Source: Basidiobolus meristosporus CBS 931.73
Lineage: Eukaryota; Fungi; Basidiobolomycota
Assembly: GCA_002104905.1 (NCBI GenBank)
Contig: MCFE01000682.1
Location: 1-46,323 of the forward strand
Direction: 5' to 3'
Length of the DNA: 46,323 nucleotides
Shown in pieces: positions 1 to 43,987 of the stretch; position 1 is the stretch's first letter; each line of letters begins with the position of its first letter. The notes beneath the pieces are model-generated. The model was given only the letters and a program-made list of their open reading frames with translations. It was not told the origin of the DNA and searched no databases. A program made the translations under genes and the position numbers.

Positions 1-727
1 TAGTAAAGAATTCTTGTCTCAGTAACATTTTCTTAGCAGCTGAACATGACTGGTAGGTGTCTTCTAATGCCTTCCAGGCATTCTTTGCTGTTTTTGCTCT
101 TGAGCATTGAATTAGCAATTTGTCTTTGACATTAAGGCAAATGCAGTTAAAGGCACTTTGTTCTTTCTTCTGGTACTTTAAGGCTTCCTCTCCCACGTTT
201 TTAGGAGGACATTCTTCTCCCATGACAATATCCCAAAGGCCTCTTTCTTGTGGCAGCATCTTCATCATCACCTTCAACACTTGATAGTTTGATCCATCCA
301 ACTTTTCAGCAGAGGGAGAAATTCCAGTAATAGCAGTAGTCAACATTGCAGAGAGTGACAGCTTGGGGCTCATAACCTGTTGTAAGAGTCTTGGAGATAT
401 TGGAAGTGATTGGGAGGACAAGTAGATTAATGTGGTTTTCACTTGATGATATATTGAATGTAAAAGTAGTATTTATACCTTTACCTGGTCTTGGCATTAC
501 AAACACATAGAATAGATTAAGGAAGGTCCCAAGAACATGTGTGCAAAGTTTGGTGCTGTTTGGACAACTTTGAGAATTTTCATGTTCTGGGTACCTGGTA
601 TTTTGGTGAAAATATTCTAAGTAAATCCCAACAAGAAATTTGGTCAGTATTCTCTAGGATTTGAAGGTGATGATATAAGTGACCAAGTTAGGTGAATATT
701 TAGGTGGAAATACAAATTTTTACAACA
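1..727 (-). mobile_element. Ty1/Copia LTR retrotransposon, 5' end (5' LTR 378-727, PBS 366-377, gag running off the left edge)
   Basis: 350-bp LTR bounded by TGTTGTAA...TTACAACA and closely matching LTRs at 41287, 43109 and 43988. Adjacent PBS reads GGTTATGAGCCC on the minus strand, followed by gag (EKLDGSNYQV.KVMMKMLPQERGLWDIV). Confidence 0.92.
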
Positions 728-1500
728 GGGAGATGGGAAGACAAGTCAAGCTGCAGATACTACCATATCCCAATCTCATCAAGAATATTACTTTCAAGTC
801 TGTCATAGATGTGATGAGTTGGCACATGGAAGACAGCCAGGCAGAGTTGGCAAATACTGAGGACAAATGTGCACATGGAGACACCTATGCCAATGGCATT
901 AAGAAGCTAAGCAGCCCCACTGTGTGGGTAATCAGTTAAGTAATGCAAAGTTGAATTGGGTGCAACAAGCAACCAATTCTTGTTAGGAAAACTCTACCAA
1001 GGTATGCCGGATTTCTCTTGGTCACAAGCCAACTACTACACCATTCAGTATGGAATTCACACAAACAAGAGCCCAACTGCACATATACAGGGAACTAGAA
1101 TCCTGCAGGGAGAAGGAATATATTGGTTCAATACCAAAAAGCTCTTTGCAGATATTCTGGAGGTATTCATGGCACAAGTGGCAACAACCAAGCATATAAT
1201 TGCAAGATGTATATGTTATCAGCAGTACAAGGTAAATGACAACTTTGCAAGTATCACACTAAAAGGCCATAAAGTTGAGGTGATAGAAGTATGTCAATTG
1301 CAGCAGGTGTGTGCATTTGTAGAGGTTGCCAAGCAGGAGGCCATAGTTTTTTTTTGATTAAAACTATATGTGGAATACCCAAGGTAGTGGTGGGTAAGCA
1401 AATAAAGAGGGGTAACTATACAGTGGAATATATGAATTACACAAGGGGAGGTAGAAAAAGGAAATATTATTTGGTAAATTGGTACAGTAGCATTATACAG
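728..1500 (+). mobile_element. Degenerate Ty3/Gypsy-like integrase remnant (tentative)
   Basis: Broken frames contain a zinc-finger-like segment (KHIIARCICYQQYK, resembling the Cys-x2-Cys end of the integrase HHCC finger) and a downstream GIPKVVVG segment resembling the integrase core. Confidence 0.4.
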
Positions 1501-1809
1501 AACCAGCTTTAGACCATTATACTGCCAATATAATGCCATCAGATTCTTGCTGTGAGGCCATCAAAATACTGTGAAGTTTCTTGCCATATAGGGCAATTGG
1601 ATGTCCTGGCCAGTTGGATCCACTTAAAATGGTTGTAGAGCACAAAAAGACTGCAACACTACCATGCAATTATAGTCACAGCACCAATCAAATCTTGTCC
1701 AGTTTATGCCTTTATTTGGTAGCAAAATTAGCAAAACACTGTTGTGATCCTGTTATAAGATTGTTAAGAGGGTCAGTAATTCCAAGCTGCTGGTATTATG
1801 ATGGTCTCT

Positions 1810-2844
1810 AAGCAGTATCCTGACAGTCAATCTGGATCAGATCCACCTGCGGGACCAAATTATTTTCATAGGGCTCATTGGCACTTGATTTTCTTAATTC
1901 TACATCCAGGAACCATCCATATATGAAATTTGAGGTCAAATCTTCAGTTCTGGACTCTAGGGCTGATACAAGGCCCTGAAACTTGTCTGTCAGGCTATTC
2001 AGGATGGTTACTATCACATCCTCATCAGTAGTTTGTACACCTACAGACTCCAGCTCATCCACCAGCTGGTGATTCTGTTAATTAGATTTTTTATTTCTTC
2101 TCCTGACAGCATCTTTGTAGTAAAGAATTTTTGTCTCAGAAACATTTTCTTAGCAGCTGAACATGACTGGTAGGTGTCTTCTAATGCCTTCCAGGCATTC
2201 TTTGCCGTTTTTGCTCTTAAGAATTGAATTAGCAATTTGTCTTTGACATTAAGGCAAATGCAGTTAAAGGCACTTTGTTCTTTCTTCTGGTACTTTAAGG
2301 CTTCCTCTCCCACATTTTTAGGAGGACATTCTTCTCCCATGACAATATCCAAAGGCCTCTTTCTTGTGGCAGCATCTTCATCTTCACCTTCCACACTTGG
2401 TAGTTAGATCCATCCAACTTTTCAACAGAGGGAAAAATAGCAGTGATAGCAGTAGTAGACATTGCAGAGAGTGACAGCTTGGGGCTTGTAACCTGCTGTA
2501 AAAGTCTTGGAGACATTGGAAGTGATTGGGAGGACAAGTAGATTATGTGGTTTTCACTTGATGATATATTGAATGTAAAAGTAGTATTTATACTTTTACA
2601 TGGTCTTGGCATAACAAACACATAGAATAGGCTAAGAAAGGTTCCAAGAGCATGTGTGCAAAGCTTGGGGCTGTTTGGGTAACTTTAAGAATTTTCATGT
2701 TCTGGGTACCTGGTATTTTTGGTGAAAATATTCCAAGCAAATCCCAACAAGGAATTTGGTCAGTATTTTCTAGGATTTTAAGGTAATGATCTAAGTGACT
2801 AAGTTAGGTAAATATTTAGGTGGAAATTACAAATATTTACAACA
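1810..2844 (-). mobile_element. Degenerate Copia copy: 5' LTR 2494-2844, mutated PBS, frameshifted gag
   Basis: LTR homologous to 378-727. ORFs 2295-2621, 2041-2394 and 1808-2062 are successive out-of-frame pieces of the same gag seen at 43489. The left boundary is approximate. Confidence 0.88.
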
Positions 2845-2885
2845 GTAGCACCAGCTGAAGACCAGGGCATATGGGAACTAGTGAA

Positions 2886-3041
2886 TAGACTTGTCCCATT
2901 GGAGAGTGCCACATTGAACTATGAGTCCCAAATAGTGCCATAGTGTGCCAGAGAGGTATTGCACACCTATACTTGGCCACACAATGTGGCATTATTTGGC
3001 ACTCATGGCTCAATGTGGCACTATCCTACAGAACAAGTCTA
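2886..3041. mobile_element. Small MITE-like inverted-repeat element, TA at both ends
   Basis: Left arm tagacttgtcccattggagagtgccacattgaactatgagtcccaaatagtgcca pairs with the reverse complement of the right arm (tagacttgttctgtaggatagtgccacattgagccatgagtgccaaataatgcca) over ~60 bp. Confidence 0.7.
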
Positions 3042-3535
3042 ATGAACAATGACATAAAGCTGTAGGGATCCTGCAAAAGTCATGGAGGAAGAGTGTTACT
3101 AGCCAAGTGAGTGGTTGGGCTTAATTGTAATGTTAGGTATAGGGACTTGTTTAGGTCAGTACAATTAGGCAGTCAAGTCACAAGTGACAATTGAACAGAA
3201 ACAAACCAATTTGTATGAATGAAAAGTAAGAGCATTGTCTGAGTCAGGAAGTATGGAGTGTGAAACAGGAGCAATAGCAAATCAATGTGCACAAGCATTG
3301 GAGGTGATTGAGTGTCCAGGATCACAAAGTGAGAGAATTGGCAGGGAATCAATCAAAAGCCACTCATGAATTGTTATAATGATAAATTTTGACTTTGTTT
3401 TTTGTGAAGTCTGGGGTGCAATTTTTTAATGGTTTTTGCATGGTGTCCTTACTCCATCAATACCTCATATTCATGGGATTAATATTCTGTAGTAACCATT
3501 TGACAGGATCATCATGAGTTATTTTTCATAGGGGT

Positions 3536-4840
3536 GGCTTCCCTTGTTACTTCTGAGGTTTACTTGGATAGTTCTCTGTTCAGCTGCATCAAGAGCTCTA
3601 CTGTCTCTCCATGAAAACCTTGTTGAATGAAATTGCTTGATATTGGGTAGAAAATTCTTCTCAGTCATTGAAGTGTGGAGATGCTTTGGAGTCAATATAT
3701 TACATCTGAGAATCCTTGTATGCTGTTATGCTGGAAACCAATATGAATATTTTATCTTGAGTGGTTGCAGCACTTCTATGTTTGGGCCTTTTGTGCTGAT
3801 TATCTCTGACCTTGAAGCACTGGTCAGATTTGTGTCCTTTCCTTTTACAGTGGCTGCAACAAAGGATCCAGTTGCCTCTAAAGGGTCTTCAGCACCTACT
3901 TTTGTGGCTATTGCTTCTCATTCAGAGCATCTTCTTCTTCCTTCTGGACTGGCACTTCATCTACTGAGTTCCTCATCCAAGAGCCTTCTATACATGTAAC
4001 TCAAAGTTCAATTCTCCAGATATGGACTCTAGGACTGATACAAGACCCTGAAACTAGTCTGTCAGGCAACTCAGGAGGGTATTTCCATGAACCAACATGA
4101 TGATACAGCTTGGTCATTTTTTCATTGCTTCTACTAAGAGCTTCTTTATGGTAAAAAATATTTGCATAAAATACATTTCCTTAGCATCTGAACATGACTA
4201 ATAGGTATCTTCTAGTGCCTTCATGGCATTTGTTGCCATTTAGATCATAAGCATTGAATTAGCAATTTGTCTTTAACATTAAGGCCTCCTCTCCTATATC
4301 TTTAGGTGAGCATTCATCTCCCAAAACAATACCTCAAAGGCCTCTTTCATGTAATAACATCTTCATCCTCATCTTCACTTTCCAGACTTTGTAGATAGAT
4401 CCAGCTAACTCCTCAGCAGAGGGGAAAATTCCAACAATGGCAGTAGTGGACCTTGCAGAGAGTAACTGCTTGGGGCTCATAGCCTGCCAAAAGAGTTTTT
4501 GGGGATTTTGGAAGTGATTGAGAGAGCATGTAGATTATGTAGATTATATGGTTTTTGCCTGATGGGTATTTAATATAAAGCGGTTTTATACTATCCCATG
4601 GTCTTGGCAGGACAAGTGTGTATACTATGCTTGGGAAGGTCCCAAGAGTATGTGCACAAAGTTTGGGGATGCTTGAACAACTATGGGATTTCTAATGTTG
4701 TGGGTACCTGATATTCTGGTGAGAATATTTGGAGTAAATCCCAAGCAAGGGGTTTGGTCAGAGTTCTCTAAGATTTGTAGGTATAGATCTAAGTGACCGA
4801 GTTAGGTAAATATTCAGGGGTAATCACAAGATTCATAACA
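3536..4840 (-). mobile_element. Old, highly diverged Copia copy (LTR ~4485-4840, gag and protease remnants)
   Basis: Diverged LTR, PBS remnant (rc of GGCTATGAGCCCC), and minus-strand remnant AYKDSQM*YIDSKASPHF matching the protease region at ~42200. Confidence 0.8.
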
Positions 4841-7453: not shown

Positions 7454-8262
7454 ATGGCCAAATCAGCAGTTCTTGAGCTCGTCAGGGCATCCATCGCGGG
7501 TCCCAACCCCAACCTTGACCGTCTCGTCAAACTGTTCTCCACTTTCCGAGGCAATGACAAAGTTCTTATGGTTCGTGGTGGGGTTTTCCCTTCTCTAACA
7601 AGCCCCGCAAACTAACTTGCTTCCCATTCAGTTGATTCAATACACCTGCAAAATCTTGGTGGCCTACTTCAACTACCGCAAAAAACCCGGCCTCGCCACC
7701 CGTTTTGCCAACCTCGGTGGACCCACCGCTGACTTCCGTATTCTCCTCCGTTACTCCGGACTCGTCCCAATGCTTCAGGCAATCTTGGCGGTCGAGAGAA
7801 GCCCACCAGCTTCGCGAACTCTACTCTGGGTGGAGAGGCTTCAGAATTTAAGCATGGTGATCTATTACCCTCTAGAGCATATCTACTGGCTGGGTGCACA
7901 CAACGTCATCCCTCTTTCCACAGAAAAGACCAACAAGATCAGTCTCTGGTCGTGCCGCTTCTGGGCTGCATACGTCGTCCTGCAGTTCATCCACAGCTAC
8001 GAGGAATATCGTCTCTGGAACGTCAAGCGTATCGGTTTGTTGAAGAAGTCCGGCGAAGACTCCGTCGACCCCAACGAAATGGAAGCCTTGATGGCCGAGA
8101 AGCGCAGCATCAAAGATGTGGCATATCGTGAACACCGCTTACTTCCCCATGACTTTGCATTGGTCTCTAGAGAAATCGCCAATCCCCGAATGGTTCATCG
8201 GTGTTTGTGGTGTAGTCGCTGGCCTATACCAGCTCCAATTTGCCTGGGAATCCACAGCCTGA
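7454..8262 (+). CDS. PEX11: Peroxisomal membrane protein, Pex11 family (1 intron; apparent +1 frameshift near 8112-8115)
   Basis: MAKSAVLELV...FRGNDKVLM|LIQYTCK, YYPLEHIYWLG, SLWSCRFWAAYVVLQF. The expected C-terminus (IVNTAYFPMTLHWSLEKS...AWESTA*) lies in the +1 frame from 8116 to TGA 8260-8262. Confidence 0.85.
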
Positions 8263-8690
8263 TCGGTGATTTATCCGCGCCAGTGCAACTTGGCCGTATT
8301 CCCATAGAAACCATTCAAATGTCACCTTTAATAGCCATTATGTATTAAACCCTCATATAACCAAGTATTTCGTGCATAAAGCCAGGTTATTTCCATCACA
8401 ATAAAGCTCGATGTTCTGGGAAAATCACGCGCTCGTTCCATGAATGTACCCACACTCACACTCACACTCCCACCTCTCCCTAGTTGATGGGGAATTCTCG
8501 GTAATTTTCCAGGATTGCCAATGGATCAGATTGATCAGGAATCCAGGAAATCGTGGAAAATTTTACTCGGAAAATATAGTCGCAGAAGATAAACAAATCT
8601 GGTTAGTTTTTCTTGGGTAAACGATACAAGACCTTTGGGTGAATTTCCTACCTGTATCTGTTCCTGGTACACGTACACCGCACTCGCAAA

Positions 8691-11027: not shown

Positions 11028-11624
11028 ATGGCTCTTCCCGCTGAAGTTTCTCAATCCGAAAGCATCTTGCTTTTCAACAAGTGGTCCTACGAGGATCTTG
11101 AGATCAAGGACATCTCCTTGACTGATTATCTCCAGATCAGAAGCCCCGTGTACCTGCCCCACACCGCCGGTAGATACGCTACCAAGAAGTTCCGCAAGGC
11201 TCAGTGCCCCATTGTCGAGCGTATGACCAACTCCCTCATGATGCACGGTCGTAACAACGGCAAGAAGCTCATGGCCGTCCGCATCGTCAAGCACGCCTTC
11301 GAGATCATCAACCTTCTCACCGACCAGAACCCCCTCCAAGTCCTCATCGACGCCATCATCAACTCCGGTCCTCGTGAAGACTCCACCCGTATTGGAAGCT
11401 CTGGTACCGTCCGTAGACAAGCTGTCGATGTTTCTCCCTTGAGAAGAGTCAACCAAGCCATTCACCTCTTGACCACTGGTACTCGTGAGTCTGCCTTCAG
11501 AAACGTCAAGACCATCGCCGAATGCTTGGCTGATGAGCTTATCAACGCCGCCAAGGGATCCTCCAACAGCTATGCTATCAAGAAGAAGGACGAGCTTGAG
11601 CGTGTTGCCAAGAGCAACCGTTAG
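11028..11624 (+). CDS. RPS5: 40S ribosomal protein S5 (uS7)
   Basis: [40 protein letters not shown] and [10 protein letters not shown]; single coding exon. Confidence 0.98.
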
Positions 11625-15190: not shown

Positions 15191-17159
15191 TTATTTGTTC
15201 TTGATCTTCCAGCTGCCGGGCTTGGAGAGCTTCTTGGCTAGCTTCTCCTTGTTCACTGGCTTGACCTTGTCGCGGTTCTTGTTCTTGACGTTGGCCTTCT
15301 CGTAATAGTGTTGACCGACCTTCTTTTTGTTGGTGGTCATGCGGGTCTTCTTGGACTTCTTGTCGTCCTCGCTCTCCTCGTCGTCGCTGATACGTTTCTT
15401 CTTCTGCTGGGCGGAGCTCTCGGCAACCTCCTCAGAATCGTCCTCGCTCATTTCCGCGGTTTCCTCCCCGACGACGCTTTCAAAGACCTCGTCCCAGTCG
15501 GGAACGTCCTCGGCATTCTCCGCCTCCTCGGTCTCTGCGGGGGCGTCCCCTTCAGACTTCTCCAGACTTTCTTGAGCTTGCTCTTCCTCTTGCATCTCCT
15601 CATCCTCCCTTCTCAAATCATCAGGCAAGAAATCGGCGACCACTTGGATCTTTCGGAAGATCTGCTCCACGCCGATCTTGCTCTTACCGTCCTCTTCCTT
15701 GACTGGCTTCTCGCCCTCAGGGGGTGCGGCGTAGAAAGGAATCTTACCGCGCAACCAGTCATTCAGCACCATCTTGGAGACGGCGGTCAGATCGGGCTCA
15801 CCACCCTTGAGCAACTTGCCGGTCTTGTGGGAGAGCTGGGTGAGGAAGTCGATGTGGTCCTCCCAGTCGTCCAGCTCGTAGGTTCGACTGATGTACTCCC
15901 GTCTAACGCGGGAGAGGATTTGTGGGATGTGGTCTTCGGGATTCTTGATATTCTCGATACGAACGACTCCCTTGAGCACGATGTCGGTCTCGGTATCTTC
16001 GGTGGAGGGATGCACCACACCTGGACAATCGATCAGGTAGATTCTCTTCATCAAGGTGATGTACTGCCAGACCTTGGTCTCACCAGGAATGGGAGCCACG
16101 TTACAGACCTTCTTCTTCTTGAGGGTGTTGATGATGGAACTCTTTCCGGTGTTTGGATACCCGATGAACCCAACACTGATCTGCTTCTTGTCAGCGTGCA
16201 GCTTGGCGAACTGGCGGAGCAGTTGGATCAACGAACCCTTACCGAAGGAGTTGTTCACACTGGCGTGGAAGGCGAGGGTGGGGTACTCTTGGGAAAGGTG
16301 CTTGACCCAGCGGGCAGTCACCCAGGTGGGAACCAAGTCACACTTGTTCAACACGAAGATCAAGTGCTTGTGTGGGGTCTCTTTCTTCATGTGGCTGATC
16401 ACGTTTTGGCAGCGGGTGCCAAGGGGATCTCTCGAATCCAACACATGGATGACCACATCCGAGGAATCAATCACCTTGTACAGCTCGTTCCAAATACGCT
16501 TCGACTGACCCTTCTGGAAGATCGCCTCACGTGCTTCGGTGATGTAGTCGGTGATCTCGTTAGCGACCAAGGAAACATCCTTCTTCTCGCTGTAGTTCTC
16601 AAGGGACTCTTCTACATTGGTGGCCAAATCCTCCAGACTGCTGATGTTCAGCTTGGGCTTCTTACGCTGAGCCTTAGGGCCGAAGGTATGGTCGAAGGTC
16701 TCAGTCTCCAACATGTGCATTCTAGAGGTTTTGGTTGGATCGGTCAACAAACTCATGGGGAGCTTGTTCTGACGAAGAAGAACCTGGTAGGGGTCATTAA
16801 GCTTGGACCCAAGCTTCTCACGGAAGTCCTCGAGCGCCTTTTGACCGATGACTCTGGTGTTTCCTGGATGAATGAGAACGGTTAATGAGGAGCCAGGAGG
16901 GCAACGTAACTTTAAGCGAAACCATACCGAACCACTTGCGGTTAGGCTCAACACGAGCAACAGGGGCCTCTTTGCTTTGGAAAGCGGCGGCCTTGATGAC
17001 ATTGCCGTCTCTGTCGTGAACAGCTCTGCCGGAATTCAACATGTTCACGAACTTGACCTTGTTTTTGTCACGATAAAAGTTCTCCCCCTTCAAGCGAGTC
17101 CCGTAGGGCTCCTTCTCGGAGCGGGCGACTCTGTTCTTTTCCTTCTTGAATTTTCCCAT
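15191..17159 (-). CDS. NOG2: Nucleolar GTPase Nog2 (1 intron)
   Basis: NGP1NT region ([36 protein letters not shown]) and circularly permuted GTPase motifs [12 protein letters not shown] and DCPG. Confidence 0.97.
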
Positions 17160-19026: not shown

Positions 19027-19150
19027 CCACCTTGACGCCGTATTTCTTCCATCATTACCACCTTGACGTCGTATTCCTTCCATCATTGCCACCTTGACGT
19101 CGTGTCGCTATCATCAATCCCACCTTGACGTCGTATTGCTTCCATCATGA
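19027..19150 (+). repeat. 4 x 31-bp tandem array ending on the P2X start codon
   Basis: Units start at 19027, 19058, 19089 and 19120, each beginning CCACCTTGACGYCGT. The fourth unit contains the ATG at 19147. Confidence 0.9.
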
Positions 19151-20835
19151 TGTGTTTTCCAGAAATAGACTGGGACGAGATACTTGGGTATTTTCAACCC
19201 TAGATTGGTGGTCGATTTGCCATTTAACTGATTTCTACAAATAGCTACAATACTACTCGAATAGTGCAGATCAGAGACCGCAGGCTCGGTTTACTTTATC
19301 TCCTGCTGCGTCTGGCAATCGTCGCCTATATCATTTACGCGATCGTTGTGAACAGGTCCTATGAGACTTATCAACCGGTTGTCCCTGGTATGTCTTGTCT
19401 CGTGCTAGACTTCCTCCCATCTAAGGCTAATCGCGCGCTTTTAAGGCTCCACTCAGATAACCTTGATTGAGCCACCAGGGGGTCTCCAAGCCCAAGACTA
19501 TTGTCGTCGTCTCAACTGTCTTTTCTGGACCACAAGCCAGATCATGTAACGCATCCTCCAGTGCCTCCTTAGTCGCGGCAGAGTACTAAAACCATCACCT
19601 CGCATTGCCAGGGTGCGACAGGATCCAAGCTCAGTGTTTCTCACGACCAGTGTATCGATGAAGCGATACTTTCAGCCGCCAGGCTGCAACAATCTACTCC
19701 CGGGCACCCCCGGGTGTAAATTCGACCTTCAGATACCAACTGAAACCCAGCGGTATTTCATTGCGGACATTGAGAGGTACACAGTAAGTGGCATGTGTCA
19801 AGGCAACGGTTGACGTGATGTGGCACTGACGCTCCATCTAGCTATTGATTCGACATACCATGAAACGATCCCCGGAAGGCGCTCTGATCCAAAGCAACTC
19901 CCTACCAGGGTCGCTGATAGGTATCGATGGCAAGGTTTTCCCCGACGCTGATCGAGGCCACTTCGCGAACGAAACCAGGCTCGAGAGCTTCCCCGGGGAT
20001 CTGATGTCTTTGGGAACCTTGCTGGGCGCCGCCAACGTATACCTGGATGGTACGCAATGTCGGTCCGGATTCGAGCTAGCATCCACCTAACCCAACTTGC
20101 TGTAGATCTCTCACCCGCCCCGGACGCCAATCACAGACTGGGGGAAACTTTGAGAGCATCTGGAGTATCCATACCAGTCACCATCAAGTATCAAAACGAG
20201 CCCTTGAACCCAGGCGCCATCTCTTACAAGTATTTCCCTGATGCCTCCAATGCCGAGGTCTACGGCATCGAAGAGGCTCAGTACGATCCAGAAAACGGAA
20301 GCTATCTTGTTTATCAGAGACATGGGTAAGCGGAGCGTCGATGTCGAGTTAACCTGCGATCTAACCGTTCCCCCCTTTACTTGATAGCATCCAGTTGGTC
20401 TTCTCTCAGACTGGTAGGACATAGACATCATATAAGCCGCATTGTCATCTCTGACCCTCTGCTTTAGGGAACCTTGGGCGCTTCTCGCTGCTCCTGCTAT
20501 TAACCAGCTTGGTGGCTGCTTTTATTCTTTTAGAGGTGGCCAAGTGGCTGGTAAACCTACTCATGCTCCGTACGTTCAGAGAGCGTCGCATATACAAGAA
20601 GGCGAAATACTCCCGCACACAAACATTACGCACCATCCGCGAAAGACGCAGCATCCGTATTGCCAATCGGAACAGTGCCAGTCAGGCGAAGAATGAGGAG
20701 CTCCCGGTCGTCAACAAACCATTACCGGATCTACCGCCACCGACATTGGACGAGGAGGACGAGGACAGGATCATGGTTTTGGAACTCGGCAAGGACGAAT
20801 ACCAAGGGGAAACCTCACAGAGAAGCCTCGTCTAG
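19147..20835 (+). CDS. P2X receptor-like trimeric cation channel, Dictyostelium type (8 exons)
   Basis: Spliced N-terminus IDWDEILG|YNTTRIVQIRDRRLGLLY (YxTxR motif plus TM1), ectodomain VFLTTSV, YFIADIERYT|LLIRH and GDLMSLGTLL, pre-TM2 YQRHG|IQLVFSQTG|NLGRF, TM2, then a YKKAK (YxxxK) motif. All 7 introns are GT-AG and keep the frame. Confidence 0.88.
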
Positions 20836-22247
20836 ACAGGCGCACCCTACAAGATTTCGGCCAATCTTGACGAATACTTCGGCCTGGCCCATCCACGCCC
20901 TGGCTTTGGGTCAGCAATCATGTGGTCCACCATGTCCTTGAGATTGCACTGCAGTTTAGCCCCTCTGGCCTGCAACAAAAGTGGTTTATTTGTTGTACAA
21001 ACCATGTGCCCTACCAAACCGACCCCTCCCTATCCCCATTGCATTAGTTTTTCCTTGGCAACTATATAAATAATATCAATGAACATCTACATACTGGGCC
21101 AAGTGATGATGCAAGCGAGCAACAAGGCTGCGAACCACCCAATTCCCAACTGTCGTTACCATGGCAACATGGTGTTGCGTGATTGGAGGGTGGGATTCCC
21201 AAACCTCGTATCATTCGAAAGAAACACCAACACCCTTGATACAGACGTTACACAGTCTCTGCCAGCGTTTCGAGCCAAATGTCACACATGGTATTGGTCA
21301 GATAGGTGTCTCACTTAGTTTCCGCCGGGATGGTAGACACAAATGTTCCACCCATGGAGAGCGGCTGAAATAGGAAACAGAGGCAGAGTGCGAGACAACG
21401 ATCCCCGAAACCCGCCATCGCGAATCTCCACCTGGCTCCTAACAGTCATGGCCAGAACTCTATACGTAATGGTCGCTGGGTGATACGTCGGACATTTACT
21501 GAAATGGGAATCATTCAGTACACTATCCGCATTTGTAACGCGGGTTGTTACTGATTGGAAATCCGGATTGATTAACTGCACCAGCTTCCTTGGAGAAAGG
21601 TGTCTACCGCTGCTCCATATGGTCACGCTTTCCATAGCCGGCCGTCGTGTAAAGTCAACGACACACTCACCCCGCGTCTAGATGAGATGCACACATGGGG
21701 AATCATCGAATTCGAGGGGCTATCAAATAAGGCATCTTGTTCATGTAAATTCCGAAGCACCAGCTGAACAGTCCATAGGCCCATCTTAGTTGGCTCGGGT
21801 GTTACATCCACTCCACCAATCCAGTCTCGACTACAGCACTGGCTATATTGGCAGCGGTTGCTCAGAAAATTTCCATTTGGAAACAGATTAAGATAAATAA
21901 AGTTATCTGGCGAGTTCATCCGCTGATGTGCCTGATACTGCCCATCACAGCCATCACCATCATTGGCTGGGGTGGATTCCGATCTAGGGTTAATTTAGCC
22001 CGGGGATTGAATAAAATATACTGGCCAACCTTTTTTTCACTCCCGAGCCGAGCGATACACAATCAATGGGAAAGGGGGGCTGGAGATTCTTAAAATTCGG
22101 AGTCTCCTTTCGGCCGGTTCGCAAATCAACTTCACCAGCTTTGTCAACGTTTTACCGAGATTGGGGTTCGATTTCCGGACGTCTACGGGCCCATATAAAT
22201 TCCCCTCCCACCCGCACCATCCTCATTCCCCTCGTTCGCGCCCATTG

Positions 22248-23000
22248 ATGTATCCCGTAGGCACTTCCCAAAATCCCGTGATCCTTCCAACCAACTATGT
22301 GTCACCACATCAAAAAGATGTCCCAATTCCTCACACGCCCTTGATTTTTCGCCCACTGAACGAGGACCAATTGATGGCCATTCTGGCCACCCCTAGCCTG
22401 CCACCGGCCTTGCAGGTCTACGAGAACACCTGCCTCACCGACTTCGCCACCCAGATCGTGGGTCGGCTGTGGCATGGCGACACCCGACCCCAGTACTTTC
22501 CCCTTGCCGGCTTTCGCAAGCTCTGCTACATCCTCATCAAATCCGCCTCCATCACAGCCCACACCCTGGCGTTGATTTTGCGCTACGTCGCGCTGTTCAG
22601 ACAGTACGAGCCCTACGCCAACACCCAGCCCGGCTCCGAGTTTCGCGCGATCATCGTGGCCACCATCCTGGCCAACAAGTACCTCGAAGACAAGCCGGTG
22701 GCCCATCGGGCCTGGGCCGACATCACCAACGTTACCTGCCAGGAGTTGAGCCAGATGGAGATGGAGTTCTTGTGCCGGATCCACTTCCAGGCTCACGTCA
22801 CCTCGACGCAGATGGCCTCGTGGGTGGACGCCTTGAGGTACTACCAGGTCGAGTTCAGCGGGTTCAACACCAGGCTGAGCCTCGCGGTGAAGCCCGATCC
22901 CATCCCATCAACCCCCATCGTCAAACCAGTCACGTGGGAACAGGCAGCCACCAAAAAGCGCAAGTATGATGTTTCCAACGAATGTCTGTGTCTCTTGTAA
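22248..23000 (+). CDS. Pho85-type cyclin (Pcl/Clg1/Pho80-like cyclin box)
   Basis: TLALILRYV...GSEFRAIIVATILANKYLEDKPVAHRAWADIT...ELSQMEMEFL is the Pho85-cyclin box. Single exon; start assigned to the first ATG. Confidence 0.85.
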   Translation: MYPVGTSQNPVILPTNYVSPHQKDVPIPHTPLIFRPLNEDQLMAILATPSLPPALQVYENTCLTDFATQIVGRLWHGDTRPQYFPLAGFRKLCYILIKSASITAHTLALILRYVALFRQYEPYANTQPGSEFRAIIVATILANKYLEDKPVAHRAWADITNVTCQELSQMEMEFLCRIHFQAHVTSTQMASWVDALRYYQVEFSGFNTRLSLAVKPDPIPSTPIVKPVTWEQAATKKRKYDVSNECLCLL

Positions 23001-28784: not shown

Positions 28785-31414
28785 CTAATGCAAGTTATCA
28801 TATTCTTTGAGATATCCAAGTAGTCGCTTTTTATGGATGACTCCCACAAAGCGACCTTTATCTACAACACATAGGTAGCGCGTTCCAAGCTTGATGAACA
28901 GCTCTAGTACCACTTCCATCGGTGTATATTCCGTAACCGTGACAGGCGCATGATCCATGTAGGCACTAAAGTCATACTCATCATCAGGCACAAGTTCGGG
29001 ATGCTCGGTGAAGTGGCAACACTTGTGCAGATCCAGGTTCTTGAGCTTCTTGATCACGTACTCCAACTCGTTACAGGCTATATACCCAATAAGATAGCCG
29101 TGGTCGAGAATGGGAAAGCCTCCATCCGGATATTCGCTGCCTAGCATACGTTGAATCTTCTTCTTCAACATCTTGATGGTATTTGGTTCGTTCACACTAA
29201 TGACGTCCACATGATACTCGGTGATCTCTCCGGTACGTCCTAGGAAAATGTATTCCTTTTTGGAGTCCAGATAGGGATGTCCCTTTTGTTCAATCAATCC
29301 GTCGTAGATACTCTCTTCCGAAAATACGTCGCCCGTCCATTTTGCAACCAGGTTCGCAATGATCAACGGCAGCACGTACGAGAGTGAGCCAGTGAGTTCG
29401 AGCATAATGACGATCAAGGAGATGGTCATCCTTGTGGTTCCTGTAAGGGTGGCTGCCGCGCCAACGACCGCGTACAGCCCAGGGTTGATACACTGCTCTG
29501 AACCGCAGCTGGAAAAGAATGGACTGGATGGGTGGTTGATATGAAGCAATTCGACACCAATGCCGAGAATCTTTCCAGCCAACGCGCCAACTACCATCGA
29601 TGGAATGAAAATACCGCACGGAATTCGAATGCCAAATGTAAAGCACACAAGGAACGTTTTGATGACCAATGCGATGGCTAGATCACCGACAATAGGTCCA
29701 TATCCCGAAGGGCTACTTGGGCAGAGAGGGCGGTCTACACCGTCCCTTTTGCACTGTTGGAACAGTTCGGCAACCAACTCGCTGTTGCTTATTTTGGTCC
29801 ACTTGTTCCAGTAACTGCACAGCGTAGTTATGATAATCAAGACCACCACCTCCAAGATAGGGTAGTTCTTCAGTTTGGTAGAGCGCATCTTGTTGTACCA
29901 GAGATTGACTTGGACAAAGAAATAGCCGAACAGCCCTCCAAATATACCCAGAATGAAGAAGAAGATCAACTCGAAATACTGCCACGGCTGATCGTAGAAT
30001 ACCTGGAACAGGACGATTTTCCCGGTTCTAAAGGGGTCCCACAGTTTCAAGAAGAAGGCACCAGAGAAGGCACAGACGAAGCTTCTAATCAACACACGGT
30101 TCGGAAAGTAGTAACTGACTTCTTCGAGACTGAATAGGGCACCACCCACCGGGGCGGCGAAAGCTACGGCCACGCCCGCTGCCGCCGCAGCTGACAGAAC
30201 CTCACGTTTCTTTGCCTCATTTTTGTTGACTTTAGCAAGGGCGCGACAGCACACATTGCCTAAGCAGCAGGCAATGTGTACCAACGGGCCCTCTTTGCCG
30301 GTTGCTAGGCCCGAAGAGACCGACAGTATGATGCCAATGAACTTGACCCAAAGCGTTCGGAAGCCCAGGTATCCACGAATCACAAAACCACTCAAAATGG
30401 TTTTGACCTCTGGGATACCACTGCCTGCGGCATACAGCTTTCTGATTGGCTTTCCTTTTGGATTCTTCTTCATCGTGGCACCGTAGTACACCAACAGTCC
30501 CGCAATCAAGCCCCACAGAACCGCGAATCCGATGTACGCAATAAACGCCACCCATCCACGGGTAGTGGTGCTGCGATGCAGTATATCAATGTCCCGCCAA
30601 TTCACCCAATCAGCACATCCCGCCTGACCGGGACTATCCCAGCAGCAAAACGTCTGTTTATGGAACACGTTTTTCTTGCAGTAGCCAAGCTTCAGGTCGG
30701 AGAAGAAGCCCTCGGCAAACGAGATCATCGCAGCAAGTGAGCCACACAACGCACCAACGACCCCTACTAGAAGCCACATCTGGGCGTGCTCCCACACATT
30801 CAGTAATTTCCCGCGGATTCCCTTGATGCTCTTCAACTGGCGTTGGCGAGCCGTATTCTTTACCATGTCGTGAATCCAATCTAGAGACGATGGAGGCAAT
30901 GGTTTAGACGAATGATTGATGATAAGGTGTCACTGCTAGAACCTACCGATGGACGAATAATCCTCATACCACACTCGCAACCCATTCTTCTCGGTGGACA
31001 AGTCTCGAACGTCTGCGTCGTAGTCTTGAAGCTTTTGGGAGCGGTTGGAAAAGAACTTGTGGTTTCGGCGGGGGTTGTGATTACTATATACAGTCTCTTG
31101 GTTCTCTTCCTCGTAAGACATCTCAAAATCGTGACTGATCATTGGGGACCAGGTGTTCGAGTGGTGTAGAAACACCTTTGAGCGTCCTCTGCACAGAATG
31201 GATCAGGGTCAGTTGACAATGGAAACGTGGGCAAAGGTCGATTTACTACTTACATATATTCGTCATCGGGATCCAAGTTGTCTGGAGCAGCGGAAATCAG
31301 GTTGCAGGAGCTATCGATGGGGGTGAGGTGAGTCCGGGGAAACGTGGGTGGACAAAGGGTACTGTCACTTCGTCTAGTTCGCCCGTTTCTTTCTTCGTGA
31401 ATATCAGAACTCAT
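28785..31414 (-). CDS. CLC family Cl-/H+ exchanger, ClC-3/Gef1-like, with two CBS domains (2 introns)
   Basis: Signature motifs GSGIPE, GKEGP (gating Glu), LFSLEE (proton Glu) and GIFIP. Exons join as ...EYI|GRSK...YSSI|DWIHD. Confidence 0.94.
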
Positions 31415-35831: not shown

Positions 35832-38004
35832 ACTTCCATTAGGTGGGTGTTTGTGAGAGATGACAGGGATACAAAAAAGATTAATCACATGCTTATGACC
35901 AATGTTGAAGGTGTTGGCTGAGCCAAAGGCAAATATCAAAGTTAACCAATGGAGTAGATGTGAACCGACAATAAGCTGTAGTAATAGAAAGGTTGACACT
36001 TGTTGCTAGGTTTTGCTTTCGGGTGAAATTCTTGTTTTCAATAATAAAGATACAGGAGCTAAAACAAATGAAGAGAGTGATGACAGCATTTTAACGTGAC
36101 TCAATTAGATGAAGATAGAGCATTGTACGGCAATCGTTCTGTCAGATTTAAAGCACAACTCTGCAAATAACTTGTTGAAAAGTTGGATTTTCTGTAACAA
36201 TAGTATTTCACACCATTTCGCATTCTTCAAAAGCGTATGTGTAGGGTTTGAAAATTGGAACGATACATAAAAGTTTTGTTTCTTATTGCATATTCGATAT
36301 AGAGTTTAAGGTGATGATTATTCTTATCATAAACTTACGATCCTACACAAAGGGATTGTAGAAGGGTTTGAGGTTTTCCATGTTACGGCTTCATATGTCA
36401 AAGTCCGGACCAAATCTCACTTTTCATGATCAGAAACATGCAACAATTGTCAGGATGTTAAATTGAATCAATAGATTTGACGTAACAATCATCGAACGCT
36501 TTGTTGGTTTCCAAACTCTGCATCACACATCAACGGATCAGGAACAGCATTTACAACCTTGGTATCCTGGTTGGATTGCAATGATGGAAGGCATCCTTCA
36601 GCGACACATGTTCTTGTATGGCCCTGCCGCTGGGTGAGCCATAATGACACAGGTGAAGGCAGTTAATACTTCAACCATGATGATATACAAGATTTCGAGA
36701 TTTGAATAGCTTCAAAGTATTGCGCTATGCGATCTAGTGGCTGTGGATATGTCTAATATGTCAATATCAGCCCTCAAGCTTCGATAAATACTGTAGCAGT
36801 GCCCCATCCAATGGCTGTACTCTAGATATGGAAAGATGATCACAATACCATATATCATATGGACACATGGATTCTTAATTCCCAATACAAATCAGATTGT
36901 GGAATCTCCATAAATCCTCAAATCTAGGCCCTTGGTTTGATCCAACACTGCAATGCGCAAAATAGATTCAGAGAACATTGCTACAGATTATGTTTCGTTT
37001 ACTCAGAAATCCAACTTTATGGTAGATTGAATTTGTACCAGTTGATTATATTGAATTTGTATCAGTTCATACCAAATGAATAGTATGCATTCTTGACCAT
37101 ACGTGCAGTAACGTATGAGCGTTGGAGATCATGGCATGTAACAATTTTCTGGCGAGATCCTACCTCTATTGGAGTATTTGAAAGGGTTGCTGGTCTATTA
37201 TGAGATTTGTATATTGACTAGTAATGCTAACAAGTAAAAAGCGTCCTGCGAAATTAGTGAAGGTTAAGCAATTCCTTAAACCCAAATATTTAGGTTCATG
37301 TTCCAGACATTCTACGGGATTACCCGAGGGCATTGCTACTCAAGGTAAAGCACTATTTAGTAGTAGGTCTCTTCAACCTGGAAATCTTTTATATCCGAAA
37401 GCGTTATATGCACAGGGCGATAGTGATATATGGTATATTGGCATCAAACCATCAATTCCCAATTATAAGGAGTCATCTCTATTTGGACGTGCATTTGTCA
37501 TTAATCTCTTACTCCCAAACGTAGGAAAACAACGGTATTTGAAAATAAATTAAATAATGACATCTGGTAAACAATCCCAAGTGATATATGCTTCGATCTA
37601 TTATTAATATGCTAAGGGGTTGGCGACGATAGCAATTTGATCTGTTCAAACTATGGGCATGTCTTGATGTTGAAAGAGAAAGATATCTGTCCCCACAATA
37701 AGCCACTGGTAGTACAGCCGTGATGCCATGCTCATACTGCTACAATAAGGCTTATAACAATACAGGCCTCCGTACCAGGAGAACTGGCATGCCAAAATAG
37801 GCACCGACTTCATTCTAGCCAGTTGTGTTCGTATATCAAAAATTGCCTTGTTGAACTCTCATGTGTGACTTGGGGGCATTCTGCGTAAAAGAAACTCCAT
37901 CAGTCTCACTACTGAGTCAAATGCATTTGTTGATACATATAATCAATCATTCAATGGTGAAACCTCTGCTGATGTATTGAAGCCTTGACTTACTGATTAC
38001 TTCG

Positions 38005-38070
38005 TTACCTTGCTATATATATGTGACTCACCGATGATTACCTTACTATGTATATGTGACTCACCGACGA
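38005..38070. repeat. 33-bp tandem duplication, each unit carrying TGACTCA
   Basis: ttaccttgctatatatatgtgactcaccgatga / ttaccttactatgtatatgtgactcaccgacga. Confidence 0.75.
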
Positions 38071-38873
38071 CTGCTTTGCCTTACTATATCCTCACTGCTC
38101 ACCTAACCCTATATTTGGCGCTTAGCTTATTCGCCCCTTGTGATTACACAATCACCATAGCTATGAGCCCCCAATGCTTTCTCACCTATCCCTATTTGCT
38201 GATTAGCGCATTTACACCTCTGTGGCCAATCATTTCAAGCTCCCAATTGCTATATAAGCTGTATTGTGTAGTAGCATTTCTCTTCGACTGATGATATACT
38301 GGTTTTCCAGCTTTGCTTCAGGTTTCTTGACTTTGATCATAACCATGATGTGATGTTGTGGAGTCTGGTGGGTTTGTTAGCGCCTTAGTCATTTGTTGAC
38401 TTTAAGTTGGATTCATCAATGAGTGAAATATTCTTTCAAGATAAACTCACCAGTTAAGAGAATTTAATTCCATAGAATCTCTTGATTTGTAAAGAGCAAA
38501 TGAGTAAGCCTGGTGGATTACATAATATATTAATAAGGTACTTTGTGGAATATGCTTCTTAGACATTAAATGTTGTGTTTTCTCTGATAGATTATACATC
38601 CTACAGATCATCCCATGATATATGTGTTCCATGCCCATAGAAGATGTAGACATGTTCACAGCATTCCTTGGTGAATACTTGAGTTATTTAGTTCTTAACC
38701 ATCACTCCAAGTTGCTAAAGTTTGGGTAATAAACTGCTCACTACATATGCAATGAACATGTTTCCAATATCTCTAGATGAACAGGTCTGTGCAGCTTTCA
38801 ACTGTTGGATAATGCACATATCCAGTGAAGTGCTAACCAAGGAAAAGTAGTCATTTATGTATCTTCAATAAAG

Positions 38874-39280
38874 GTGATTAACATACACATTCATTGTAGA
38901 GATGTTCTAAATATATTTTTAATTCTTAGTACACCTGTAATACTCTTCAAAGCATTCTGATATTGAGTCAGGTGATCAAGCTGCACATAGATTAATGTGT
39001 AGCTGATTAGTATAATATTACAAGTCATTCTACGTAATGATTACACATTAATGACTAGATTCTAATACCATTGATAGAGATGATTTAACATACACTTTCA
39101 TTGTAGAGGTGATCCAAGTGTGTTTTTTGCCGTCAATACACCCTGTAATATTCTTCAAAAGCACTCTGCTATTAAATCAGGTGATCAAGCTGCACATATA
39201 TTAGTATATGGTTGATCTAGTATAAATATCACCAAGTCATTCTGTTGTAATGATTATGCACTGATAACTAAACTCTAACC
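38874..39280. repeat. ~207-bp diverged tandem duplication upstream of the UBR1-derived gene
   Basis: Shared anchors taacatacac (38879 and 39086), ttcattgtagag, tcaggtgatcaagctgcacata and caagtcattct at constant spacing. Confidence 0.85.
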
Positions 39281-39417
39281 AGTAATGAACTAGATTTTGC
39301 TGAATGCAGCTTCATTTGTGTATGCAATAGAAATATCTATGACGGCACAAATGAATAAAGAGGAGGATAATACTTTGCATTTGCCAACAACCAATATATT
39401 TGAGCATTAAGATACTA

Positions 39418-40628
39418 ATGGATTCTCTAATCACTGCTAAACTGCAGCGAAAAATAACCCTACCACAATACTTGCACCAAGCGCCCAACTACCATAAGTA
39501 CTTCCTTAGCCCATCAGTAGAGACTGAAATATTACTGGCCTTTCTGACTTCATTGTGCAACAACCAAGACGAGTACCAGGAATTACTCTACCCCCAAAAC
39601 GCACCCGAAGATAGGTACTACCGCAGCTATTGTGCACAAGGATTAGGCAAAGATTAATAACCAACTGGTACTAGGAAATCTACACTAGACGCCTTGCCAA
39701 CAGATTTATTAGTGTCCATAAAGGAAACCCTTGCCACGGTTTTTGATTTTGTCCTGGAAACTTACGTTGTCACACGTCCCCAATGGTCCACACAAACCTT
39801 GGAGTCGGGTAGCATCATAGAAGAGTCCATTGCGGCCGGCTCGTATATATCTTGTGAGGAGATCGAGCAAACTGTCTTTGCCTGTGTTCTTTGGAAGACC
39901 CAAGTGGGGGATCCGAATTCGTCCATTTGCCAGCTTCAAAAAGCTGCTGGTTGTACAACGGAGGCGGCAAGAAATATAGCTACTCTCTCCCAGAGTAAGG
40001 TACCTTTTTGTTAGAAGACCTTTACAGATCACCTTTCATTGACCAGTGGTAGGGAAGAGCAGTAGTCGCTCTATCCACAGATGTAGAGCGTCTAATCAGG
40101 ATTGGGTCTAGTTTGGCATCCTGTGGCCTGCGCGTTACCATTCGGTCAGGCAGAGACACCTTTCGAGAAGAGATTGCCAGTTTACTTCTTCGGTGTGTAC
40201 AGGAGCTATGTACCAGTCGATTGCCACCAATCATCAAGATAGTGCGTGACCAGCTGCTCAGCGGTTGGCAAAGAGATTCTATTGATGTATGCAAACAATT
40301 ACTTCAGATCGATATGCTACTGCTATCTAGTGGTTGCATGTCCGTTGAGGCAAATGGTCACTTAAAAGCACTGTATTACTGTGCTTTTCCGGATGGCAAG
40401 AAAACCTTGAGTACATATTATCCCTTTAATGCTATTCCCCAAGTTTTTGTCTAACTTGCCATTGTTACAGCTTCTAGGTTTACTGCGCTATATACTGCAT
40501 TGACTGGCAGGGTAATAAGCGAGACAAAAGCAGAACTACTTTTTGAATCCTCCAAGCACACAGATGAGTATGATTTCGTTGTTCTAACTCTGGGTGCATT
40601 GCGCCCTTACTCGCTTGTTTCAATATAA
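39418..40628 (+). CDS. Truncated UBR1 (N-recognin)-derived protein, ~345 aa, 4 exons; no UBR box, degenerate ClpS-like domain, no RING
   Basis: Exons 39418-39614, 39675-39999, 40053-40410 and 40471-40628 join in frame through GT-AG introns (1038 nt). Segments LPTDLLVSIKETLATVFDF, FACVLW...AAGCT...KGRAVV, LRVTIRSGRDTFREEI...QLLSGWQ and LQIDMLL...RFTALY match fungal Ubr1 as I recall it. Start and last exon are less certain. Confidence 0.72.
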
Positions 40629-41040
40629 GGTAGAATTAAGTGATATTGGCAATATAAAGAGTATAGCAACGTTGTAAAGCTACAATATACTGGGGAACTT
40701 AAGCTGGAAATTTTCAATTCAGTCATTGGTGCAATACCAAAGAGACTGCTTGCCTGCATTAGCAAAGAAAAGCTCAATGAGTCTGCCACTGTATGTTTAA
40801 GGTGTTTCAATTGGGACAATGTATCATGTCACATTTAATTCAAGTTACTTGTACAATATCAACCAACCTGTATGCTTCAAGCTACAGCTTACATGCAATG
40901 CTATTGATTGACTATTTATACACTTAGAAGTTCTGTATACATCCTGAAAGTACATGATAGTGCAAATCACTGGGGCATTGCTAATTAATTTAGAACCTTA
41001 AAGATCAAACTATATCACTTCAGTAAAATTGGGTAAAATA

Positions 41041-41286
41041 TGTTGTAAGAGTCTTAGAGATATTGGAAGTGATTGGGAGAACAAATAGATTATGTGGTTT
41101 TCACTTAATGATTTATTGAATATAAAAGTAGTATTTATACTTTTACATGGTCTTGGCATAACAAACATGTAGAATAGGCTTAGGAAGGTCCCAAGAACAT
41201 GTGTGCAAAGTTTGGGGCTGTTTGTGTTGTAAGAGTCCTGGAGATATTGGAAGTGATTTGGGAGGACAATTAGATTATGAGGTTAC
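41041..41286 (-). mobile_element. Two interrupted Copia LTR ends (41041-41224 and 41225-41286)
   Basis: Each begins TGTTGTAAGAGTC (rc of the LTR 3' terminus) and is cut off by the next insertion. Confidence 0.88.
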
Positions 41287-43108: not shown

Positions 43109-43987
43109 TGTTGTAAAAATTTGTATTTCCACCTAAATATTCACCTAACTTAGTCACTTAGATCATCACCTTCAAATCCTAGAGAATACTGACCAAATTC
43201 CTTGTCGGGATTTACTTAGAATATTTTCACCAAAATACCAGGTACCCAGAACATGAAAATTCTCAAAGTTGTCCAAACAGCCCCAAACTTTGCACACATG
43301 TTCTTGGGACCTTCTTTAACCTATTCTACGTGTTTGTAATGCTAAGACCATGTAAAAGTATAAATACTACTTTTACATTCAATAAATCATTAAGTGAAAA
43401 CCACATAATCCACTTGTCCTCCCAATCACTTCCAATATCTCCAAGACTCTTACAACAGGTTATGAGCCCCGAGCTGTCACTCTCTGCAATGTCTACTACT
43501 GCTATTACTGGAATTTTTCCCTCTGCTGAAAAGTTGGATGGATCTAACTACCAAGTGTGGAAGGTGAAGATGAAGATGCTGCTACAAGAAAGAGGCCTTT
43601 GGGATATTGTCATGGGAGAAGAATGCCCTCCTAAAAACGTGGGAGAGGAAGCCTTAAAGTACCAGAAGAAAGAACAAAGTGCCTTTAACTGCATTTGCCT
43701 TAATGCCAAGGACAAATTGCTAATTCAATGCTCAAGAGCAAAAACGGCAAAGAATGCCTGGAAGGCATTAGAAGACACCTACCAGTCATGTTCAGCTGCC
43801 AAGAAAATGTATCTGAGAAGAAAATTCTTTACTACAAAGATGCTGCCAGGAGAAGAAATGAAAAATCTAATTAACAGATTACCCTGCTGGTAGATGAGAT
43901 GGAATCTGTGGGCGTACCAACTACTGATCAGGATGTGATAGTTACCATCCTGAATAGCCTGACAGACGAGTTTCAGGGCCTTGTATC
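43109..43987 (+). mobile_element. Young Copia copy: 5' LTR 43109-43457, PBS 43458-43469, gag from ATG 43489; interrupted
   Basis: 349-bp LTR with TG...CA ends; gag EKLDGSNYQVWKVKMKMLLQERGLWDIV; cut at 43987. Confidence 0.93.

Follow-up and report, generated by a model that had tools for sequence, protein, structure and literature searches.

Organization of the P2X-like Gene

An intact gene of the P2X receptor family was found at positions 19147–20835 on the forward (+) strand of the window, by which we mean the whole 46,323-nucleotide stretch of contig MCFE01000682.1 from the fungus Basidiobolus meristosporus CBS 931.73. As far as can be judged from its sequence, it is a strongly conserved new member of this family that is without the usual ATP-contacting residues. 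The gene has eight exons and 425 codons (coding sequence of 1278 nt), and residue numbers given below refer to this 425-aa model. The coordinates of exons and motifs are collected in Table 1.

The seven introns are 54–66 nt long each, all of them are bounded by GT..AG, and plausible branch sites were recognized by eye in most. The original prediction for this locus had described an intact gene of eight exons with a 26-nt micro-exon, and had quoted the motifs YNTTR, TLIEPP, VYQRHG, IQLVFSQTG, KWLVNLL and YKKAK; all of these were found in place.

The public model of the gene, ORX82087.1 ("hypothetical protein", 369 aa), which was retrieved at 100% identity when exon 6 was searched by phmmer against the whole library, comprises exons 4–8, micro-exon included, and part of exon 3. 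Its start is an out-of-frame ATG within exon 2 joined into exon 3, and it is without exon 1, the YNTTR motif, the N-terminus and the first transmembrane segment (TM1). An ortholog from Basidiobolus ranarum (P0011, 429 aa) is 81% identical and has the full N-terminus. Backed by the annotation of this ortholog and by the Pfam match described below, the eight-exon structure is, by comparison, a better model than ORX82087.1.

Assignment to the P2X Family

The window protein was searched exon by exon, and its joined form was looked at by means of the N-truncated ORX82087.1 (P0001) and the B. ranarum ortholog. Exon 2 alone matched PF00864 (P2X_receptor) with 31.2 bits (cut-off 27), and the full-length ortholog scored 66.1 bits; P0001 reached only 25.2 bits because TM1 is missing from it. 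In a phmmer search of the PDB with exon 2 (E up to 5), the matches were all P2X chains (14 of the 15 listed) and covered the N-terminus and TM1 of P2X2, P2X1, P2X4 and P2X7. Exons 3–6 searched singly gave no Pfam match, and exons 6 and 8 searched singly against the PDB gave no P2X match; a family signal is detectable from single exons for exons 2 and 8 only. With an ectodomain-only profile (A3), no PDB chain was found at E ≤ 0.01, and at E ≤ 10 only P2X chains were found, with E values of 0.02–0.76 and collinear segments. By these searches the ectodomain is very divergent. The motifs YNTTR and YKKAK, which correspond to YxTx[K/R] and YxxxK, are both kept in the B. ranarum ortholog.

An AlphaFold2 (AF2) model, built on 11 sequences, was obtained for the B. 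ranarum ortholog in place of the window protein. Its mean predicted local distance difference test score (pLDDT) was 67, with the ectodomain mostly at 70–90, and it contained helices at residues 29–54 and 314–342. VIA-align compared this model with P2X1, P2X2, P2X3, P2X4 and P2X7 at Z 13–15. For zebrafish P2X4 (zfP2X4, 4dw0_A), Z was 14.0 with a root-mean-square deviation (rmsd) of 3.5 Å over 191 residues (model residues 60–309); for 9bpd_A, the rmsd was 3.3 Å over 186 residues, and the Z range for P2X1, P2X3 and P2X4 was 14–15. In total, 85 chains had Z ≥ 8, and P2X chains made up all of the best 50 of these 85. An earlier AF2 run on five sequences (pLDDT 47), for which all Foldseek matches were P2X with template-modelling scores of 0.3–0.4, was superseded by the 11-sequence run. 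The ESM Atlas model of the ortholog had a predicted template-modelling score (pTM) of 0.61, and its nearest cluster, mostly from Chytridiomycota, was auto-named "P2X receptor B".

Together, the profile matches and the model of the ortholog establish membership in the P2X family, with two predicted TM helices flanking a beta-rich ectodomain of the "dolphin" fold. The P2X assignment proposed earlier from the two TM segments and the YxTxR/YxxxK motifs, and its placement in a fungus outside Dikarya, are thus borne out by the PF00864 matches, the fold scores and the chytrid-dominated Atlas cluster. Grouping with the Dictyostelium ("Branch 1") receptors is only a lead, its basis being Atlas clusters with Dictyostelium-style names and mostly chytrid members.

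Conservation between Two Basidiobolus Species

In the B. ranarum locus (L001), the eight exons are all present and agree in length and phase with those of B. meristosporus. The exons are 70–83% identical at the nucleotide level and gapless, except for three gapped columns in exon 8, and the introns are 35–58% identical. The micro-exon is of equal length in both species, and 8/8 of its amino acids are identical. A gene for an NGP1/Nog2-type GTPase lies upstream in both species.

Over 358 codons, the proportion of nonsynonymous differences (pN) was 0.091 and that of synonymous differences (pS) was saturated at 0.78; for the ectodomain alone, pN was 0.087. Because pN is about 0.09 while synonymous sites are saturated, the whole protein is under strong purifying selection. 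This includes the remodelled pocket segments, since TLIEPPGG and EEAQYDPENGSYLVY are unchanged between the two species. The possibilities of a pseudogene, contamination or gene transfer were ruled out by the synteny, the introns and the pN/pS pattern.

Residues of the ATP Site, the Second Transmembrane Segment and Cysteines

The canonical phosphate-coordinating residues are K68, K70, R292 and K309 of human P2X1 (hP2X1), equal to K70, K72, R298 and K316 of zfP2X4. They were mapped by HMMER alignments to solved P2X chains from the PDB and by family alignments, with an ambiguity of 1–2 residues at two sites. At the four positions B. meristosporus has T/L, I/E, G/E and Q, none of which is basic under either placement.

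The KxKG segment that follows TM1 (K67/K69 in hP2X4) corresponds to T67-L-I69-E70-P-P, the two alignments being one residue apart, and there are zero basic residues between TM1 and the first cysteine. The first lysine of the DdP2XA type (K67; SLKAP in relatives) is replaced by Ile69. At the NFR site the sequence is Y-G275-I-E277-E, where Arg falls on Gly in the profile alignment or on Glu in the pairwise alignment. In relatives, K/R is kept at this site as EYK or KYR by the profile alignment, under which the loss of the basic residue appears Basidiobolus-specific. At the K309/K316 site (K289 in DdP2XA), Q292 (CAG) of B. meristosporus stands against Lys (AAA, VYKRHG) in B. ranarum; of the four canonical basic sites, B. 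ranarum retains this last one only. The region of the FT motif and K190/K193 reads ERYT152-LLIR156, so that both the Thr and a basic residue are retained; at the position of this basic residue, Glu or Asp occurs in the remaining fungal relatives. zfP2X4 ADAERFTVLIKNNIR was aligned in this region with the clade profile siADiERyTlllehsir.

The conserved Asp of the second transmembrane segment (TM2; D349 of rat P2X2) corresponds to N333. Both Basidiobolus species have Asn here (LVNLL and LINLL), and Nowakowskiella keeps the Asp. The ectodomain contains four cysteines (DYC..NC and GC..GC), which are conserved in the clade, versus the canonical ten (five disulfides). The set of conserved cysteines is known to vary in "primitive" P2X receptors (PMC3853471).

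The replacements previously read off by eye (K to I, K to Q and Asp to Asn in TM2) thus proved right in these alignments. The loss is wider than that reading stated, as the Arg of NFR is gone too and acidic residues lie at or beside three of the sites. The features of a canonical ("Branch 2") ATP-gated receptor, namely the phosphate-site basic residues, the TM2 Asp and ten cysteines, are missing from the predicted protein. Because its phosphate-site basic residues are missing, the gene is not classed here, on its predicted residues, as a canonical ATP-gated receptor.

Relatives and the Pattern of Lysine Loss

Relatives were recovered by a library search, and by a metagenome scan for which an alignment of the exon 6 region (A2) was the query. 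The resulting alignment and tree included 11 sequences: two from Basidiobolus, one from the chytrid Nowakowskiella, one from Acaulospora colombiana, one Logan contig and six soil loci. Protein homologue searches with P0001, the alignment A1 and the ectodomain of P0011 found only the two Basidiobolus proteins and that of Acaulospora, and missed the Nowakowskiella protein; the word index of that search appears to have been swamped by low-complexity words from the TM segments and the tail. The protein from Nowakowskiella sp. JEL0407 (KAJ3124122.1, P0010) matches PF00864 with 50 bits and is named "cytochrome c oxidase subunit 1" at its source. This name is evidently a mis-annotation, and the model seems to be without the N-terminus and TM1.

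The soil loci from JGI soil metagenome contigs (L003–L008) and the Logan contig (SRR31149481, L002) represent two more sub-families of P2X-like ectodomains from soil eukaryotes. One of the soil sub-families is close to the Acaulospora protein, and all sequences that reach the K309/K316 site have Asn or Glu there, followed by Arg-His-Gly.

In the tree, the two Basidiobolus sequences form a pair with a long stem (1.66 changes per column) and short tips, three soil loci and the Logan contig form subtype A, and subtype B includes Acaulospora (Glomeromycotina). At the K309/K316 site, subtype A has Asn in 4/4 sequences (three from soil and the Logan contig), and the Acaulospora-like subtype B has Glu in three, its fourth member (L008) ending before the site. 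Lys is found only in B. ranarum and Nowakowskiella among the 11 sequences. Each of these variants is one nucleotide away from a Lys codon, which suggests that the K309/K316-equivalent lysine was lost three or more times independently. As B. ranarum still has Lys at this second site, the Gln is a recent change on the terminal branch of B. meristosporus. The first-lysine site is occupied by Lys in three subtype-A sequences, by Gln in L006, by Gln in L004 and L008 of subtype B, and by Ile in both Basidiobolus species. Judging from this alignment, loss of the lysines is a typical trait of the fungal lineage and by itself no sign of lost ATP gating.

Other basic residues are conserved in the clade. 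GETxR has an invariant Arg, and near-invariant ones stand in xRHG and after the N-x-T sequon. The sequon itself is largely conserved, which is compatible with a luminal or extracellular ectodomain. An intron immediately after RHG is common to Basidiobolus and, by sequence, to subtype A. Among the relatives compared, none has had basic residues removed and acidic ones gained as extensively as Basidiobolus, which has lost basic residues that the fungal relatives keep (ITTR to TTS, EYK to VYG and LRSG to IQSN).

Cai is said to have reported P2X homologues in 2012 from the "basal fungi" Allomyces, Spizellomyces and Batrachochytrium. In the searchable literature, the family was previously placed in chytrids and Allomyces only, and no fungal P2X-family protein has been functionally characterized. 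Fungal homologues are cited for "basal fungi" alone and were never functionally analyzed (PMC3410928; PMC4928787). Our literature search found no paper pairing P2X with Basidiobolus, Zoopagomycota, Mucoromycota or Glomeromycota. The gene of B. meristosporus, that of Acaulospora and the six soil-metagenome loci extend the P2X family into zygomycete-grade terrestrial fungi. Unlike the basal fungi, Basidiobolus belongs to Basidiobolomycota, an early-diverging, terrestrial group of zygomycete grade outside Dikarya.

Comparison with Known P2X Receptors

The Dictyostelium receptors P2XA–E share with the Basidiobolus protein the two-TM P2X build, an ectodomain barely similar to that of animal receptors, the N-terminal YxTx[K/R] motif, and the missing or incomplete set of ten canonical ectodomain cysteines. 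The lysine loss also has parallels among them: the mutations K67A and K289A disrupt ATP-evoked currents of DdP2XA, but dP2XB, which is without the first lysine, and dP2XE, which is without both, are still ATP-gated (Ludlow et al. 2009, PMC2787382). Given suitable ionic and pH conditions, four of the five Dictyostelium receptors responded to ATP as ATP-gated channels, and P2XC was silent, giving no ATP current under any condition (Baines et al. 2013, PMC3774368). Branch 1 receptors are described as being without two or more canonical residues (PMC10620158). The Basidiobolus protein differs in its TM2 Asn in place of Asp and in its four ectodomain cysteines, none of which is found at equivalent positions in DdP2XA, a receptor without any canonical cysteine (Fountain 2013, PMC3853471). 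Furthermore, the Dictyostelium receptors are intracellular and belong to the contractile vacuole, which fungi do not have.

The Asn at the TM2 position is shared with OtP2X of Ostreococcus tauri, which has Asn at D349 and is a functional ATP-gated channel with a permeability ratio PCa/PNa of 0.4, that is, low Ca2+ permeability (Fountain 2013, PMC3853471). However, OtP2X keeps the lysines equivalent to K69 and K308 of rat P2X2, and B. meristosporus has neither. The chytrid protein from Nowakowskiella and the B. ranarum ortholog are 31–32% identical and have the clade motifs SxAPDA, GETxR, YKYFP and RxG in common. Where B. meristosporus has Gln and Asn, the chytrid protein still has the second lysine (YYKRYG) and the TM2 Asp (LVDLL).

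The vertebrate receptors P2X1–7, including zebrafish P2X4, show the same fold over TM1, ectodomain and TM2 as the model of the ortholog (Z 13–15), and sequence matches occur at the N-terminus and TM1, the FT strand, the GIRF-like strand, TM2 and YxxxK. In contrast, identity is only 11–17%, the basic residues of KxKG, NFR and K309/K316 are gone, four cysteines replace ten, and the TM2 residue is Asn.

Proposed Mode of Gating and Its Alternatives

We suggest that the protein contributes a subunit to a trimeric cation channel with the P2X fold, resembling those of Dictyostelium and chytrids ("Branch 1"). By analogy with the Dictyostelium receptors, its probable site would be an endomembrane such as that of the vacuole, with the large domain in the lumen. 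A nucleotide would most likely still open it, ATP being the probable one, and at high (sub-mM to mM) levels. The part of the canonical lysines would be taken by clade-specific arginines, namely those of GETxR and xRHG, that following N-x-T and, in Basidiobolus, that at the K190/K193 position; these would then line the pocket. From the TM2 Asn one would expect a pore that works but, like that of the Ostreococcus receptor, is less permeable to Ca2+. We give a probability of roughly 45% to such a low-affinity nucleotide-gated endomembrane channel using clade-specific arginines.

Several points weigh against this proposal. The pocket-equivalent sites are partly acidic (E in TLIEPP and EE in YGIEE), identically in both Basidiobolus species, which is unfavourable for a triphosphate. 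The basic residues of the relatives were lost in Basidiobolus at the three motifs named above (now TTS, VYG and IQSN). In addition, the K309-equivalent residue differs between the sister species with identical flanks, which suggests that it is no longer critical. ATP-insensitive members of the family exist, such as Dictyostelium P2XC (PMC3774368), and no functional test of any fungal P2X has been made (PMC4928787).

The original prediction had taken the residue losses to indicate a non-ATP-gated channel with a new class of ligand. This argument carries little force given the functional ATP-gated precedents (dP2XE, dP2XB and OtP2X), and its implicit premise that both lysines are required in Dictyostelium-type receptors is rejected on the data of Ludlow et al. 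2009 (PMC2787382). As each of the losses is seen in functional ATP-gated channels, the losses alone are no proof of a new ligand.

An ATP-insensitive channel is nevertheless a live minority hypothesis, because the removal of basic residues and the gain of acidic ones are most extensive in Basidiobolus. The protein would then have kept the P2X fold but lost ATP gating, and would be opened or modulated by a cationic ligand, protons, a divalent metal or membrane tension, or would be constitutively leaky. We consider this possible but doubtful. It is in keeping with the finding that 0/4 of the canonical ATP-binding basic residues are present in B. meristosporus, that acidic residues at or beside three of these sites are kept in both species, and that the K309-equivalent is free to vary (K/Q/N/E). 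The long stem of the Basidiobolus pair with its short tips (1.66 changes per column) fits an ectodomain that was remodelled and then fixed, and dP2XC is a precedent for an ATP-insensitive member (PMC3774368). On the other side, ATP gating in this branch does not depend on the lysines, as dP2XE and dP2XB show (PMC2787382). The protein has kept the Thr of the FT motif and a basic residue at K190/K193, and the Arg is invariant in GETxR and near-invariant in xRHG. In the literature examined, every functional P2X is ATP-gated and none is reported to have another gating ligand; to our knowledge, ATP gating is without exception among functional P2X channels.

The broadest form of this idea is rather unlikely. 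It holds that the P2X fold became non-ATP-gated in Basidiobolus, and perhaps in a wider terrestrial clade, with an inter-subunit pocket that turned from strongly basic to neutral or acidic and serves another, possibly cationic, ligand or the sensing of luminal pH or metal ions. The protein would then be the first non-nucleotide-gated channel of the P2X family. Should it prove functional yet ATP-insensitive, the P2X fold would gain a new class of gating.

It is less probable again that the protein serves only as a heteromeric or regulatory subunit that cannot work without a paralogue. The ligand sites of P2X receptors are located between subunits. P2X receptors do assemble as heterotrimers, and P2X6 of mammals functions poorly by itself. 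A decaying, non-functional relic or an artefact of annotation or assembly, which the N-terminally truncated public model without TM1 might bring to mind, is highly improbable, since the frame is open over all eight exons in two species with saturated synonymous sites and pN of 0.09, exon lengths and phases are kept though the introns have diverged, and the upstream GTPase gene is shared.

With its relatives from Acaulospora and soil, the gene forms a constrained sub-family in which the K309/K316-equivalent lysine was replaced several times. Its members are natural test cases for ATP recognition by Dictyostelium-type receptors without the canonical residues, a question left open by the papers on Dictyostelium and Clytia, and the K/Q pair of the two Basidiobolus species is a ready natural mutant comparison.

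Upstream Repeat and Genomic Surroundings

Table 1. Positions in the window of the P2X-like gene parts, the upstream repeat and neighbouring genes.
Feature	Position	Strand	Description
31-bp tandem repeat	19027-19148	+	Tandem Repeats Finder; 3.9 copies, 83% matches; ends at start codon
Exon 1	19147-19187	+	Start codon and cytosolic N-terminus MMCFPEIDWDEIL, then split Gly codon; B. ranarum ortholog starts MRCSMCFPDINWDEIF
Exon 2	19245-19387	+	YNTTR and TM1; PF00864 31.2 bits, profile positions 3-46
YNTTR	19246-19260	+	Exon 2; YxTx[K/R] motif
Exon 3	19446-19545	+	First ectodomain strand, TLIEPP (19460-19477), first Cys pair
Exon 4	19612-19783	+	Ectodomain, second Cys pair (GC...GC); C-terminal ERYT, counterpart of canonical FT motif
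Exon 5	19842-20049	+	Ectodomain; LLIRH with Arg at canonical K190/K193 position; N-E-T sequon, then near-invariant Arg
Exon 6	20106-20325	+	Ectodomain; GETLR with invariant Arg; YGIEE (20261-20275) at the place of canonical YNFRF
VYQRH(G)	20315-20317 (Gln codon CAG)	+	Exon 6; K309/K316 position, then near-invariant Arg
Exon 7 (26-nt micro-exon)	20388-20413	+	IQLVFSQT and split codons; counterpart of canonical GIRFDI strand leading into TM2
Exon 8	20468-20835	+	TM2 (KWLVNLL), Asn codon AAC (20554-20556) at conserved Asp position; PF00864 17.9 bits, profile positions 315-360
YKKAK	20593-20607	+	Exon 8; YxxxK motif, then basic-to-acidic cytosolic tail and TAG stop
PEX11	7617-8348	+	Neighbouring gene
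Ribosomal protein S5/S7	11028-11624	+	Neighbouring gene
NGP1/Nog2-type GTPase	15191-17002	-	Neighbouring gene
Pho80-like cyclin	22161-23000	+	Neighbouring gene
CLC chloride channel with CBS domain	28785-30899	-	Neighbouring gene

Every copy of the tandem repeat upstream of the gene carries a TGACG(T/C)CG core, CCACCTTGACG(T/C)CGT, resembling the cAMP response element in its ACGT-centred TGACGTCG. A pattern search for the core gave four matches versus 0.06 expected and found it nowhere else in the window. No such repeat precedes the B. ranarum ortholog. The repeat of B. meristosporus may be an element of the promoter or 5′ untranslated region, such as a lineage-specific array of bZIP-type (stress) sites, or may be just a minisatellite.

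The surroundings of the P2X gene consist of ordinary fungal housekeeping genes, with no cluster or mobile-element context. The GC content is 0.38–0.39 at the ends of the window (1–4000 and 36000–46323) versus about 0.50 in its middle.

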